A stretch of DNA of 64,000 bases from Orbicella franksi (lineage: Eukaryota): assembly GCA_964199315.1 (NCBI GenBank), contig OZ116706.1, forward strand, positions 28,086,001 through 28,150,000, read 5' to 3'. The notes beneath the pieces were generated by a model. The model saw only the letters and a list, made by a program, of their open reading frames with translations. It was not told where the DNA came from and searched no databases. Position numbers and translations under genes: made by a program. This document shows, piece by piece, positions 18,850-51,861 of this stretch; the first letter of the stretch is position 1; each line of letters starts with the position of its first letter.

Positions 18850-21800
18850 CTAGCGAATGTCGCTATCATCATCATCTTCGTCATTGTCATCGTCATTAGG
18901 ATCACAAGGATCCATCATTCCTTTAAATTCACTTATTTCCTTGTGCTCGCCATAAGACGATGGTCCCGGCTTTTTCTCCTCGCGTCCAGGTATGTGCAAT
19001 CTCAGGGTCATAACGGTGACACTGGCGGGCGCTGCAAAAACTATCTGGTCACCCAAAGGACAGACTGCAAAAGGGTTTGTGTCCACCGTAAAAGTCGTCA
19101 GCTTTTTACCCTTGATAAGATCCCAAGCCTCAAAGGAACTGGGTTGGTACCCTTTGGCATCTGTTGTTATTGCAGTGGTCCCGTCATGGTTGAGGTAGAT
19201 CTTGTCGATGTCCGTGGAGACAAGGTCGTGAAGCAGATTTCCACTCTGGATCTCCCAAACTTTAAGGCTCTCGTGACTTGTCACGGCTAGCATGCTCTTC
19301 GATGAAATAGCGACCATGTTTCTTCCACTAGAACCTTCAGCCAACGTATGCATCAGCTTTCCCGTTTCTGTGTTCCACAGGGCGCTTACCTGATCGTTTT
19401 TCAGCTGTAAGATGAAGTATTTACCATCTTCCGTAATGGCGGAACCATCCAAACCCAACTGCTCGCCCTCAATTGGATCCATTACCTTGTGTTCGTGCGT
19501 CTTGGTATTAAAAACCAGAAGTGGAACTGTCGTGGCGTCTTGCTCGACATAAAAACTGGCTTGGGAGCAAATCACTGTGCTACCATCTTTACTGATTAGA
19601 ATTCCTTCCAGGCGATACTTCTGGCCAAGTTTGTACTGTCCTACAACCTGCCAGTAAAGCAAACAACTTTGAACGGATGCATAAACCCTTAAAATCATTT
19701 TTCGTGTTAACTTTTCCATTAATAGCTTTGAATAGATATTAACATGTAGGTGAGATAGGTGCTTTGGCCTCATCTTGGCCAAGCATGAGTCAATCAAAAA
19801 ACGTAGTTCTATGGAAAATGAAACGAGAGAGTAAAGGAGATGATTCACACCAGAGAAGCCTCGTGATGAGCGAAATTCTCAAAACTGTCCTTAATTAAAC
19901 ACCAAGAAAGAGAAAAAGAAGTCATGCTGCAGTCCTTAACAGGACTGACAGTCCTTACCAAACTAGGAATGGCACACGATAAGTGAGAAATAGCAGAAAT
20001 CTTGCCATGTGGCCAATTTCAAATTGGCCGAGGATTAAAAAAGTAAATAAAATTACTGTATAAGCTACTTAGGTTAATTTGAAAAACAAAAGAACTGTTC
20101 ATTACCTTGCCAGTGTCTACGTCCCACACTTTCAAGTTCCGTCTGCCACGTGACAATCCAATGAAATTCTTCTTGTCAATAAACCCGACGGCCTCCAGTC
20201 GTTTGCTGGACTTCCCTTGCAGAACACGGAGCGTTTTTGCCTGGTCAAAGTCCATGAACTTGTAGTGATCAAAGTTATCTTTCTTTTGTTCTCCCACAGC
20301 GATTCGTCCAACGCCAACCTTGTCAGTCAGCATACGCAGAGGCTGGGGGAAGTTATATGCTTTGATAGAGCGGACTTTGACACCGGTAAGTGCATCCCAC
20401 ACTGCAATCTCAGGCATCATCTTGACGGTGCAGCTTGCGATCACGTGCCGATTGTCTGCTGCAACTGAAAGCATCCATATTGAATCAGCAAAGCCTTGTG
20501 TCGTGGCAGTGACATCCGTCTCATCATCATCGACGCTCTCTCGAGCATCGTAAATTCGAAGAACCCCATCCGATCCGGTAGTTGCTACAAAATCTCCCCT
20601 GCGCCCGTAAGTACCAAAGCCTGGTTGTAATCTAGCAACGACGGTGGCATCACCCGTGTCAAGGCCCCATTTTACTAATTCGTAGTTATTCCTTATAGCG
20701 ATAACTTTCTTCCCGTCCTCTGCGACAACAAGGCGATCGCGTTGCCCAATGCCGAACTCTGGGATATCTGAAACGTGCTTGCCTGTAGCAGCGTCATAAA
20801 CTTTAAGCTGCTTTATAATATATCCGTCTGACACCACAAGCAACTGCTTTCTGGAGGTAAGGTGGACTTGTGTTATTTCTGTGTCTTTTAACTCGCCTCG
20901 GATTTCTTCCTTTTGCAACTCCACGTTTATCTAAATAGAACAGTGAGGCAAAACTGAAAGTTATACAGGCAAAGATGCATGGTTATCAACAAACACTGAC
21001 AACTGACATTGCTAATACTGACTTGAGGGCGAAGCATGATTCGTATTAATAAATGTTTGAAAAATCTTTAAAAATCTCCTTTCTCCTTACATTAAGAAAC
21101 AGTATGGTAGTCAGTACCGAGAGTTAATATGTTCATCTCATAAATATCGAGAGCAAATGTGGAATGTTTTAAAAATATGAGTGGGCGTAATTCTGGCCAA
21201 GATCGTTGCCCTGAGATTTTAGGTTAGACCCTATACATTTACAGCCCTCCTGGTCAAAATACTTTCATCTGGGGAACCTCAAATACTACAAAAACCTTCA
21301 TGCTATGAAAACGGAAACTAGGGGTAACACGCTTCTGGCTTTTCCGATCTGAAAAATCGTACTTTTACCATAAACCGACTACCCACGTATAAGCAATGGT
21401 CATATTAAACAACATTAGAGCGATTCAAACCAACCTTACAAATTTCCTTTCCAGTTTTAACATTGAGAACGTGAACCGTCTTTTGGTTACGTAGGCAATA
21501 TACCGCAAGGTCCCCGGTAGCGTCCAAATGACCAAAAGTTTCCTCAACATTGATACCTTTTACAGGAATGTCATGAACAAGCTTCCCAGAGGCAGTCTCC
21601 CAGATTCGCACACCGGAGTCACCGAGAGCAACCACCATGTGATCATCATCTGCAAACGCAACGGAAGGGAACCCTCTGAACCAGTTTCCGTCATCCTTCA
21701 TGGGCTTATACTCCTGTAAGATCTTGTTTGTTCTAGCATTAATGAGGTACATGTTTGCCGACGAACCCGATGCAACAAAGATGTCGTCGTTCTTAGGGCT

Positions 21801-51200: not shown

Positions 51201-51861
51201 AACAAGTAGTCCACTTCGTTAACGAGGGTTAAATGCAAAGCTAGTGTTCTAATGGTTACCTCAAGGAAGTCACCCCATGGGGTATTCTACATGCATGTTA
51301 ATTCCGCTCAGGTCCGTGTTCTGAAAGTATGTACAACCCTGTCTAGTACATTGTGTCGAGCTTAATACATGAAATATCTGAAAACTTGTTCAATGACCAT
51401 ATTATACCTGTGAATGTTGAACTTGTAAATATCCTGACAATCTTAACATTGTCGGATACTTTAACATCCAAGTCTTCCAAGAACACTTTCTTCCAAGCGC
51501 TGTTGAACTCATCAACTTCGGTTGTGTCATCCGTTGTTTTTGCTTCACTTTTTACCACTGTATCTGAAACGTCCTTTGCACTCTCACTGGACTTTACGGA
51601 AGACGATTCCGAAGAGTTGCGCTCATTAGATTCAGTTTCATGAAATCCTTCGTCATTTGTGCGAGTCTCGGAGTCGCTTTCATCACTCGCCTCTGACTTT
51701 TCTTCAGGTTCTGATTCCTTCTCGTTGTCATTTGACCTGAGGGCGTCTTCCTGAGTTCCAGTACTGGGTTCGTGGTTGTCAGGCTGCGACTGTGGCAAGG
51801 GCTCAGGTCGGGGTGGCTGGGAAATTTCCCTTCTCCTTTTTCTTGAAACAATAATGCCCAT
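45231..51861 (-). CDS. NWD1-like: NACHT and WD40 domain protein, paralogue C (~1794 aa), same architecture plus a C-terminal extension
   Basis: Six exons: 51408-51861 (MGIIVSRKRRR...IFTSSTFT), 50901-51103, 50501-50831, 49677-50407 (GESGCGKT), 49180-49392 (VVLMLDSLDQL), 45231-48683. Total 5385 nt, open frame. Confidence 0.9.

Follow-up and report, generated by a model that had tools for sequence, protein, structure and literature searches.

It was only in 2026 that DUF4062 was identified as a TIR-like NADase domain, with a catalytic glutamate (E1008 in TEP1), which bacterial anti-phage systems have in common with human TEP1. Among eukaryotic proteins with this domain, TEP1 alone has been shown to have enzymatic activity, as an NADase, and the bacterial homologues tested are NADases too (bioRxiv 10.64898/2026.05.01.722283; 10.64898/2026.09.04.749371). 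In animals, the domain is carried most widely by the NWD1/NWD2 branch; human NWD1 and NWD2 had no NADase activity under the conditions published in the same two preprints. In the bacterial defence systems (Avs2 with DUF4062, Swarozyc, Vulcan, Vesta, Evangelion) this effector domain is likewise fused or coupled to a sensor, the output being a Glu-dependent depletion of NAD+; these systems are, however, prokaryotic and anti-phage, and their sensors are of other kinds (TPR, HEAT, phage portal binding). TEP1, for its part, carries upstream TROVE and vWA domains and acts inside the vault particle.

The 64,000-nt stretch of Orbicella franksi DNA analysed here (the window) contains exactly three genes of the NWD1 type, g1, g2 and g3, located by tblastn of exon pieces and all on the minus strand (Table 1). 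In splice models built with the guidance of coral orthologues, none of the three has an internal stop, every intron is GT-AG, and the Walker A (GESGCGKTS) and Walker B (VVL[VM]LDSLDQL) motifs are whole, which bears out an earlier, sequence-only reading of the locus as three intact head-to-tail genes with open frames and Walker motifs, down to its two ends, 51861 being the ATG of g3 and 18850 the stop of g1. The intron positions that it took to be shared are so in part: five positions with their phases (1,0,1,0,0), and no others, are common to the three genes, but two introns in the WD40 part of g1 (504 and 458 nt) are private, and an extra 5′ intron, behind a first coding exon of 51 or 57 nt, is found only in g1 and g2. 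In g2 the 3′UTR extends to 31858 or further, and g3 has a private C-terminal tail of 44 aa.

Table 1. Coordinates of the three NWD1-like genes and of their main features (positions in the window)
Feature	Position	Strand	Remarks
g1, NWD1-like	28788-18850	minus	1759 aa, 9 coding exons
g1 coding exons	28788-28738, 26958-26529, 26206-26004, 25931-25598, 25034-24310, 23509-23294, 23132-21435, 20930-20106, 19647-18850	minus	
g1 first coding exon, MGVILSRNKKQKRQSLQ	28788-28738	minus	N-myristoylation consensus and basic cluster (pattern search)
g1 exon B	26206-26004	minus	TIR-like DUF4062 core; apparent gene-conversion tract with g3
g1 exon D	25034-24310	minus	C-terminal half of TIR-like fold, SVTEDEI (E344, codon 25023-25021), Walker A (G514-S522)
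g2, NWD1-like	41640-33302	minus	1747 aa, 7 coding exons
g2 coding exons	41640-41584, 40376-39968, 39607-39405, 39093-38763, 38386-37659, 37195-36983, 36604-33302	minus	
g2 first coding exon, MGIAISRKKRWTPKVEQNE	41640-41584	minus	pattern search and gene model, predicted junction
g2 exon B	39607-39405	minus	TIR-like DUF4062 core
g2 exon D	38386-37659	minus	SVTEDEI (E338, codon 38375-38373) and Walker A
g2 exon E	36604-33302	minus	HD1-WHD-HD2, ~15 WD40 blades in two propellers, acidic tail
g3, NWD1-like	51861-45231	minus	1794 aa, 6 coding exons
g3 coding exons	51861-51408, 51103-50901, 50831-50501, 50407-49677, 49392-49180, 48683-45231	minus	
g3 exon B	51103-50901	minus	TIR-like DUF4062 core
g3 exon D	50407-49677	minus	SVTEDEI (E334, codon 50396-50394) and Walker A

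The three genes encode NWD1-family STAND proteins. Curated cut-offs are exceeded by the HTH_NWD1 winged helix that follows the NACHT (PF25469, 65.5 bits in g2 and 60.5 bits in g3, cut-off 27), by Beta-prop_NWD2_C on the window's own exon E (PF23586, 50.5 and 54.3 bits, cut-off 33) and by NACHT itself (PF05729, cut-off 26.7; 27.1 bits when g2 exon D is scanned by itself, 41–57 bits on orthologues), the ATPase scoring best as NACHT/NPHP3_N with NB-ARC below its own cut-off (19.4 against 23.5). As the DUF4062 of the window is split over exons, PF13271 was scanned on the orthologues P0007, P0070 and P0088, to which the window genes are 93–97% identical in the DUF4062 exon, with scores of 28–32 bits against a cut-off of 24.7. 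The order DUF4062, NACHT, NWD1-type winged helix, WD40 propellers is that of NWD1/NWD2, and these names already appear in the annotation of orthologues from other corals; in contrast, vertebrates have one gene of each whereas the coral has three in a conserved tandem array, and the coral N-terminus is full, with an MG-basic start, whereas that of human NWD1 is reported to be truncated in a way that affects the domain.

At the other end of the protein, the AlphaFold model of the C-terminal 1100 aa of g2 (pLDDT 87.3, pTM 0.85, 60 strands) has full-length Apaf-1 and the apoptosome as its best Foldseek matches in the PDB (3shf, 3sfz, 3j2t, 5juy; E 1e-28 to 4e-26; TM 0.47–0.56 over ~1115 aligned columns), with which it shares the HD1-WHD-HD2 and a double propeller of 15 blades (7+8). 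The coral ATPase is nevertheless a NACHT and not an NB-ARC, and its N-terminus is TIR-like and not a CARD; an autoinhibition held by the propellers, as in Apaf-1, is plausible by analogy. The tripartite STAND, NLR-like layout of the sequence-only reading is in this way upheld, but not the match that it drew to the fungal NWD/HET type. Both the fungal (NWD, HET-E/D) and the coral genes are families of NACHT-WD40 STAND paralogues with concerted evolution. The fungal proteins have a HET domain at the N-terminus, and homogenisation and positive selection act on their WD40 repeats themselves; in the coral, it is the exons of the N-terminal effector that undergo exchange, and the WD40 repeats are of old date and unlike one another. 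Exon E is hardly matched by the classic WD40 model, a search of that exon for tandem repeats detected none, the WD40 repeats being internally dissimilar, and the HET domain had no match in Pfam scans of the window exons and the orthologues.

The N-terminal structure model (pLDDT 85.7) has only TIR domains as its best VIA-align matches, MAL (Z 9.8), RPS4 (9.7), MyD88 (9.3) and TIR-STING (9.0), which cover 134–153 of 138–166 target residues, nucleoside deoxyribosyltransferases ranking next. Foldseek with the whole 382-residue model against the PDB gave nothing significant; its hits to alpha/beta-hydrolase and Rossmann folds fall in that range, and the VIA-align matches and the sequence profile were preferred to them. 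The family profile matches the TIR crystal chain of TEP1 (11gz_A) with an E of 8e-16 over profile positions 7–97, so that the cores are homologous by sequence, the coral domain differing in that exon C inserts ~85 residues where the core passes into the Glu helix; against the bacterial KpSwz the match is marginal (E 0.32). The Glu of the SVTExE motif, present in g1, g2 and g3, is invariant in 29 homologues from cnidarians to bilaterians and aligns with Glu115 of 11gz_A, where the motif is identical. We infer that it is the equivalent of TEP1 E1008, by the identity of the motif in a second HMM segment, itself weak, and by residue arithmetic over the 220-residue chain (894–1113), rather than by superposition. 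The CxxE motif of exon B, which an earlier reader had proposed as the TIR catalytic motif, was rejected because its spacing does not fit and the Glu aligned with E1008 sits on exon D. The exon-B Glu is also invariant, but lies ~66 residues from strand 1 rather than ~100. Even so, the output of the coral domain may not be catalytic.

Ahead of this domain, each of the three proteins starts with MGxxxS and basic residues, a predicted myristoyl lipid anchor. The first exon of g1 is bounded by the donor CAG|GTAATA, with TTTTCAG| as acceptor, and orthologues start in the same way; intron 1 of g2 (1207 nt) consists mainly of a tetra/octanucleotide microsatellite at 40389–41292. Of 27 full-length members of the family, ranging from cnidarians to hemichordates and molluscs, 20 begin with MG, frequently as MGCG. 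The first ~140 aa, acidic and disordered, are the least conserved part between the paralogues (25–30% identity).

At least two of the genes are in use. In metatranscriptome contigs of run X3, introns 5–8 of g1 are spliced out (800, 161, 504 and 458 nt skipped), and a JGI metatranscriptome contig (L003), 99.4% identical to g2, joins exons D, D2 and E at the predicted junctions and continues to 31858; g1 and g2 are consequently transcribed and spliced as modelled at the junctions covered. For g3, whose exons make up 84% of 45231–51000, RNA libraries contain 64–73% of the words sampled from that interval, which makes its expression probable. Contigs of run X1 that cover intron 7 were not taken as evidence for g1, as they may come from unspliced RNA or carried-over DNA, and run X22, with no reads on g1, was set aside for its splicing. 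The sequence-only reading had named silence of two copies as a point against itself; at least two of the three are expressed, and probably all.

The trio is also old. Orthologues of g1 were found in Montipora foliosa (P0070) and Stylophora (P0090), of g2 in Oculina (P0007) and Montipora (P0026), and of g3 in Acropora digitifera (P0088) and Nematostella (P0054, LOC5519197, its alignment reaching the C-terminus). Each paralogue forms its own orthologue clade across Scleractinia (support 93–100%), with a Nematostella gene joining g3 in the exon-E tree and g2 in the NACHT-region tree; at least two further clades of the family lie elsewhere in cnidarian genomes. The order g3-g2-g1 recurs in species X, a distant coral 65–70% identical to the window, while Oculina has g3 then g2, and Nematostella a g3-type and then a g2-type gene. 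These clades and this gene order indicate that the trio is older than the stony coral radiation, and that g3 and g2 are older than the split from sea anemones. Between orthologues, dN/dS is 0.11–0.20 in all domains (NACHT 0.12, WD40 0.12–0.20) and 0.02–0.05 in exon B, the strongest constraint in the protein, so that every domain, propellers included, is under purifying selection. Sites that only one clade conserves, or that both conserve with different residues, make up 39–47% of the propellers and 26% of the helical part, in line with a constraint on the propellers that is specific to each paralogue.

If these lines are put together, we are moderately confident in a reading of three ancient, intact NWD1-family paralogues whose TIR-like exons are gene-converted and whose activation follows the style of Apaf-1 and the NLRs. 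Each protein runs from the MGxxxS-basic start through an acidic stretch, the TIR-like DUF4062/NIR domain, the NACHT and Apaf-1-like helical domains to two WD40 propellers, and would act as follows: (i) the lipid anchor would hold it on a membrane; (ii) the propellers would keep it off; (iii) a ligand specific to the paralogue, and stable in evolution, would bind, leading to nucleotide exchange and oligomerisation through the NACHT; (iv) and finally, the TIR-like domains brought together would give one common output, either NAD+ cleavage or the recruitment of a partner. This mechanism we infer from the Apaf-1/NLR paradigm together with the 2026 work on DUF4062, and so too the function of the trio, which may be immune or not, and exerted as NADase or as scaffold.

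Another possibility, unlikely in our view though it keeps some weight, is that the three proteins are conserved cell-biological regulators that sense endogenous states, the TIR-like domain being purely an interaction module. Orthology that runs deep, a stable synteny and a purifying selection uniform across domains would suit housekeeping or developmental genes, many coral RNA libraries of unrelated origin contain the transcripts at a depth that is low and steady, and the human NWD1 and NWD2 are inactive as NADases; mammalian NWD1 is reported to be involved in purinosome assembly and ER/SERCA2 homeostasis, with neuronal and hepatic phenotypes (PMC7186558, PMC11897295). However, a catalytic-type Glu and a TIR-like core that are both so constrained, and both invariant from cnidarians to bilaterians, exceed what a scaffold usually needs, and NADase activity has been demonstrated for TEP1, the one active DUF4062 protein known from eukaryotes, and for the bacterial homologues tested. 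This alternative, moreover, overlaps the preferred reading, in which the nature of the ligand is left free.

A pathogen-driven array of immune receptors, with WD40 domains positively selected for changing microbial ligands and a turnover in copy number, is distinctly improbable. It would agree with a STAND/NLR architecture and a TIR-like effector, features usual in immune sensors all the way from bacteria to animals, and with propellers that are the most diverged structured part between the paralogues; nor is the array static everywhere. Oculina carries two genes of the g2 type (the second being P0020), along with another g3-like one 10 kb downstream of g2; species Y has an additional g2-type copy, its intron 6 carrying a retrotransposon, and loose exon-A-like fragments; and two further assemblies have pairs of g2-type ORFs on one contig. 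Against this, the WD40 dN/dS of orthologues stays near that of the NACHT, paralogue clades with 100% support extend across corals, that of g3 taking in Nematostella, the gene order is kept in a coral as distant as species X, and the WD40 repeats lack the internal similarity and tandem arrangement noted above. The receptor array of the sequence-only reading is borne out only in part, and the locus does not present a young one in fast diversification: paralogue synonymous sites are saturated, the orthologue clades are old, and the domain-wise dN/dS that it called for is near-uniform, with WD40 only slightly above NACHT. Uniform divergence and fixed orthology, which it had itself named as unfavourable, both hold between orthologues, whereas between paralogues the divergence is steep.

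It is this steepness that the gene conversion of the preferred reading would explain. Between paralogues, amino acid identity is 94–95% in the DUF4062 core exon (B), 77–88% in its extension (exon C), 54–59% in the pre-NACHT and NACHT, 57–61% in the helical domains and 28–41% in WD40; a shared N-terminal domain with differing propellers, and a fall in conservation from DUF4062 through NACHT to WD40, had been rightly noticed from the letters, except that the first ~140 aa do not belong to the conserved end. Synonymous differences (pS) were counted by the plain Nei-Gojobori method on tblastn alignments stitched together, 39–68 codons being available for exon B. There, g1 and g3 differ by a pS of only 0.12–0.16, against 0.8–0.9 elsewhere in the genes, with a run of 155 nt that has 3 mismatches and reaches 11 nt into the intron; g2 stands further off (0.36–0.40, 90.7% nucleotide identity to both). 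In exons B/C, pS is 0.00–0.14 among the three paralogues of species X, where tracts of similarity go 130–200 nt into the upstream intron, and 0.15–0.28 for the Nematostella pair, against 0.75–0.94 (saturated) between paralogues outside the converted exons and 0.56–0.87 between coral and Nematostella in exon B. The nucleotide tree of exons B+C clusters the copies by species (support 86% for species X, 100% for Nematostella), unlike the NACHT-region tree, which clusters them by orthologue. A garbled stitched exon C of Oculina g3 (62% identity) was taken for intron read-through or an extra intron in the stitching, not for biology, and leaves untouched the exon C block from which pS was taken. These comparisons indicate that neighbouring genes repeatedly overwrite one another's TIR-like core exons by gene conversion, which has taken place independently in the window species, species X and Nematostella at least, and that the near-identity of the DUF4062 exon is the product of lineage-specific conversion and purifying selection. 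The steep gradient between paralogues is therefore largely due to conversion of the DUF4062 exons, and not only to a stronger constraint on the effector. To our knowledge, exon-limited concerted evolution is undescribed for the NWD1/NWD2 family.

More doubtful again, and offered as a speculation with low odds, is that the paralogues form a heteromeric animal “resistosome,” in which differently tuned members co-assemble on the membrane in mixed NACHT rings with a shared NADase head, selection favouring the conversion that keeps the effectors interchangeable. TIR-type active sites and signalling filaments form across adjacent protomers, so that a composite output could work only if the TIR-like domains were matched. 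If true, a mixed-ring receptor would have been kept coherent by concerted evolution for longer than the age of the stony corals.

That purifying selection alone, including constraint on synonymous sites, made the DUF4062 exon near-identical is very improbable, and already contradicted by the comparisons above: amino acid constraint is extreme in every comparison (pN 0.00–0.05) and the exon offers few codons, but synonymous sites that change freely between coral and Nematostella are nearly static between paralogues of one genome (0.00–0.16), the similarity in species X runs on into non-coding intron, and the copies cluster by species.

In summary, as we read it, the locus presents a domain-limited concerted evolution within a receptor family, in which the effector exon has been recopied time and again over the hundreds of millions of years in which the sensors remained distinct. 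Gene conversion among coral tandem duplicates has been held to be very rare (PMC10236652), a view that the conversion within this trio would contradict, and patterns of “conserved effector, diverged sensor” are not to be read as selection alone. With its predicted lipid anchor, intact catalytic-type Glu and three stably conserved propellers, the coral trio would offer a natural panel for the trigger and the output of the NWD1 branch.

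Every long open frame between 18.8 and 52 kb of the window lies on the minus strand, and tblastn of exon pieces against the window recovers the same exon series in exactly three copies, the NWD1-like STAND genes g1, g2 and g3. With coral orthologues as guides, and all GT/GC..AG pairs tried around the HSP ends, the three models are complete, with no internal stops and introns GT..AG throughout. Five intron positions (phases 1, 0, 1, 0, 0) are common to them, g1 having two additional, private introns in its WD40 region; the start codon of g1 and g2, found by pattern search, occupies its own exon of 51 or 57 nt, and that of g3 lies on the same exon as exon A of the shared series. 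Each of the three retains an intact Walker A (GESGCGKTS) and Walker B (VVL[VM]LDSLDQL) motif.

Coordinates of the genes and of other features in the window and in the compared loci
Feature	Sequence	Position	Strand	Description
g1	window	28788-18850	minus	1759 aa, 9 coding exons
g2	window	41640-33302	minus	1747 aa, 7 coding exons
g3	window	51861-45231	minus	1794 aa, 6 coding exons
Microsatellite	window	40389-41292		almost all of g2 intron 1 (57-nt start exon to exon A); ~900 bp, tetra/octanucleotide, TCAATCAA / CAGT, 110-150 copies
(TCATCG)n array	window	30919-31066		hexanucleotide, 24.7 copies, between g2 3' end and g1 start
N run	window	56398-56534		137 bases
Two flanking ORFs	window	57616-59273	minus	169 and 125 aa
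RNA run X1 contig	window	21055-22062		covers most of g1 intron 7; 10-nt deletion at 21093
X24 insertion reads	window	18865-18892		poly-Asp C-terminal tail of g1
Exon C, second half, g3 orthologue	Oculina L001	about 445-774		poor translation in stitched reading
Start of g3-like gene	Oculina L001 (CM126639.1)	29484-29672		1793 aa, 10 kb downstream of g2 orthologue
Retroelement ORFs	Nematostella L002 (OW051994.1)	5379-9112		integrase, reverse transcriptase; directly upstream of g3 orthologue
Extra g2-type copy	species Y L006 (ENA ERZ25071802 ctg90815)	5803-9657		retrotransposon (RVT_1, RNase H) in intron 6, before large exon
Loose exon-A-like fragments	species Y L006	18143-18250, 18657-18791, 22717-22824		downstream of extra g2-type copy

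As regards transcription, the 5073-nt contig L003 from a JGI metatranscriptome (99.4% identical) splices exons D/D2/E of g2 exactly at the predicted sites and extends its 3'UTR to at least 1.4 kb, reaching 31858. In run X3, a coral metatranscriptome, contigs omit 800, 161, 504 and 458 nt with ends CT..AC on the plus strand, which correspond to the predicted introns 5-8 of g1, both private introns included, and the raw poly-A reads from X24 map exclusively to exons of g1. For g3, 64-73% of the words sampled from a stretch that is 84% exon are present in 14 RNA libraries, which makes its expression probable, not proven. The X1 contig over g1 intron 7 may be an unspliced transcript or DNA carried over into the library, and 35 X24 poly-A reads that go back 28 and add 11 extra letters seem to mark an allele in which the acidic tail of g1 differs in length.

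A protein search assigns the window to a scleractinian coral; among named hits, the best come from Oculina patagonica (84% over the large exon), Desmophyllum and Montipora, where the proteins bear the names "NACHT domain- and WD repeat-containing protein 1-like" or "qui-1-like". By Pfam, exon D contains NACHT, and the large exons of the window itself contain a winged helix of the NWD1 type (60-66 bits against a cut-off of 27) and a C-terminal propeller of the NWD2 type (50-54 bits against 33); DUF4062 and NACHT are also above cut-off in the orthologues. A model of 1100 C-terminal residues of g2 (window's own exon, 35 sequences, pLDDT 87.3) combines a helical region with 60 strands, which make about 15 blades; the solved structures that match it best are full-length Apaf-1 and the apoptosome (E 1e-28 to 4e-26 over about 1115 columns). 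By the alignment consensus, most members of the family have an acidic D-x-D-K-D-D-D motif at the end of their propeller region.

At the other end, the model of residues 144-525 of P0007, the Oculina g2 orthologue (29 sequences, pLDDT 85.7), was uninformative when submitted whole to Foldseek; VIA-align places TIR domains first (MAL 9.8, RPS4/RRS1 9.7, MyD88 9.3, TIR-STING 9.0), followed by MilB with nucleoside deoxyribosyltransferases, and SARM1, with nearly the entire target aligned over model residues 5-318. Two preprints of 2026 show DUF4062 to be an NADase of TIR-like type that depends on a catalytic Glu; TEP1 is active (E1008), and human NWD1, NWD2 and NPHP3 were inactive under the conditions tried (bioRxiv 10.64898/2026.05.01.722283, 10.64898/2026.09.04.749371). 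The family profile matches the TEP1 TIR-like crystal chain 11gz (E 8e-16), and the SVTExE motif of this chain (residues 110-115) is identical in the coral proteins; its second Glu is invariant in 29/29 sequences (E344 in g1, E338 in g2, E334 in g3). As the 220-residue chain fits TEP1 894-1113, its Glu115 would be E1008, by arithmetic, not superposition. In all three proteins, as in their orthologues, the chain starts with MGxxxS and then Lys/Arg, and since an MG start, often MGCG, is found in 20 of 27 full-length family members of other phyla, the predicted N-terminal acylation looks ancestral.

Between paralogues, amino acid identity is 25-30% in the acidic N-terminal stretch, 94-95% in the DUF4062 core (exon B), 77-88% in its extension (exon C), 54-59% in pre-NACHT and NACHT, 57-61% in the helical domains and 28-41% in the propellers. 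Between them pS, the proportion of synonymous differences (counted by a simple Nei-Gojobori method over codons stitched together by tblastn, with few codons in exon B), is saturated, 0.77-0.96, outside both DUF4062 exons, and 0.26-0.56 in those two. The window was compared with orthologous loci of Oculina, the coral species X (L004/L005, 65-70% identical, ENA assembly) and Nematostella. In the NACHT region, orthologue pS between window and Oculina is 0.40-0.53 and paralogue pS 0.75-0.94. Exon B presents the opposite pattern: 0.12-0.16 between g1 and g3, 0.00-0.08 among three species X paralogues (exon C, 0.07-0.14) and 0.15-0.28 between two Nematostella genes. Any coral copy differs from any Nematostella copy by 0.56-0.87 in this exon, and hence its synonymous sites are not constrained as such; the low values within each genome mean that its copies have been made alike. 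The similarity reaches 130-200 nt into the upstream intron in species X, and g1 and g3 have in common a 155-nt run, with 3 mismatches, that enters the intron. A nucleotide ML tree of exons B and C clusters by species (X 86%, Nematostella 100%), and one built on 490 codons spanning exon D through the helical domain, by orthologue (93-100%). What these data show is gene conversion limited to one domain, which has recurred independently in several lineages; according to a published survey of tandem duplicates in corals, gene conversion is very rare there (PMC10236652). The poor exon C reading of the Oculina g3 orthologue may reflect an extra intron, a frameshift or a stitching artefact.

The genes themselves are old. 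In a large-exon tree of 36 sequences, the g1, g2 and g3 clades each receive 100%, with Nematostella in the g3 clade, and at least two more cnidarian clades of the family lie elsewhere in the genomes. The g2 orthologue stands directly downstream of that of g3 in Oculina; in species X the order is g3, g2 and a gene whose first exons best match g1; and in Nematostella a gene grouping with g2 sits 5 kb downstream of the g3 orthologue, LOC5519197, which shares the private C-terminal tail of g3. Orthologue dN/dS is 0.11-0.20 overall across domains (WD40 0.12-0.20, NACHT 0.12, helical 0.07-0.12, exon B 0.02-0.05), and 39-47% of propeller sites, against 26% in the helical part, show conservation either within a single clade or within both but with different residues; each propeller has therefore been kept, though each in its own way. 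Elsewhere the array is not always static, and there are extra copies in Oculina, which has a second g2-type protein, and in another coral assembly. The g3-like Oculina gene starts MGIIVSRRKKR..., with an N-terminus near that of g3 and the start codon likewise fused to exon A; the g3/g2 pair may have been duplicated there.

The architecture, shared effector and distinct sensors proposed in the sequence-only reading are borne out, although, instead of its diversifying array, these are old paralogues, each conserved. The near-identity of the effector end also stands, its cause being in good part concerted evolution. Together, these two properties lead to a reading of g1-g3 as three parallel STAND switches, which would have stable but different ligands, microbial or endogenous, and a common TIR-like output, probably at the membrane, that could consist of NAD+ cleavage or partner recruitment.
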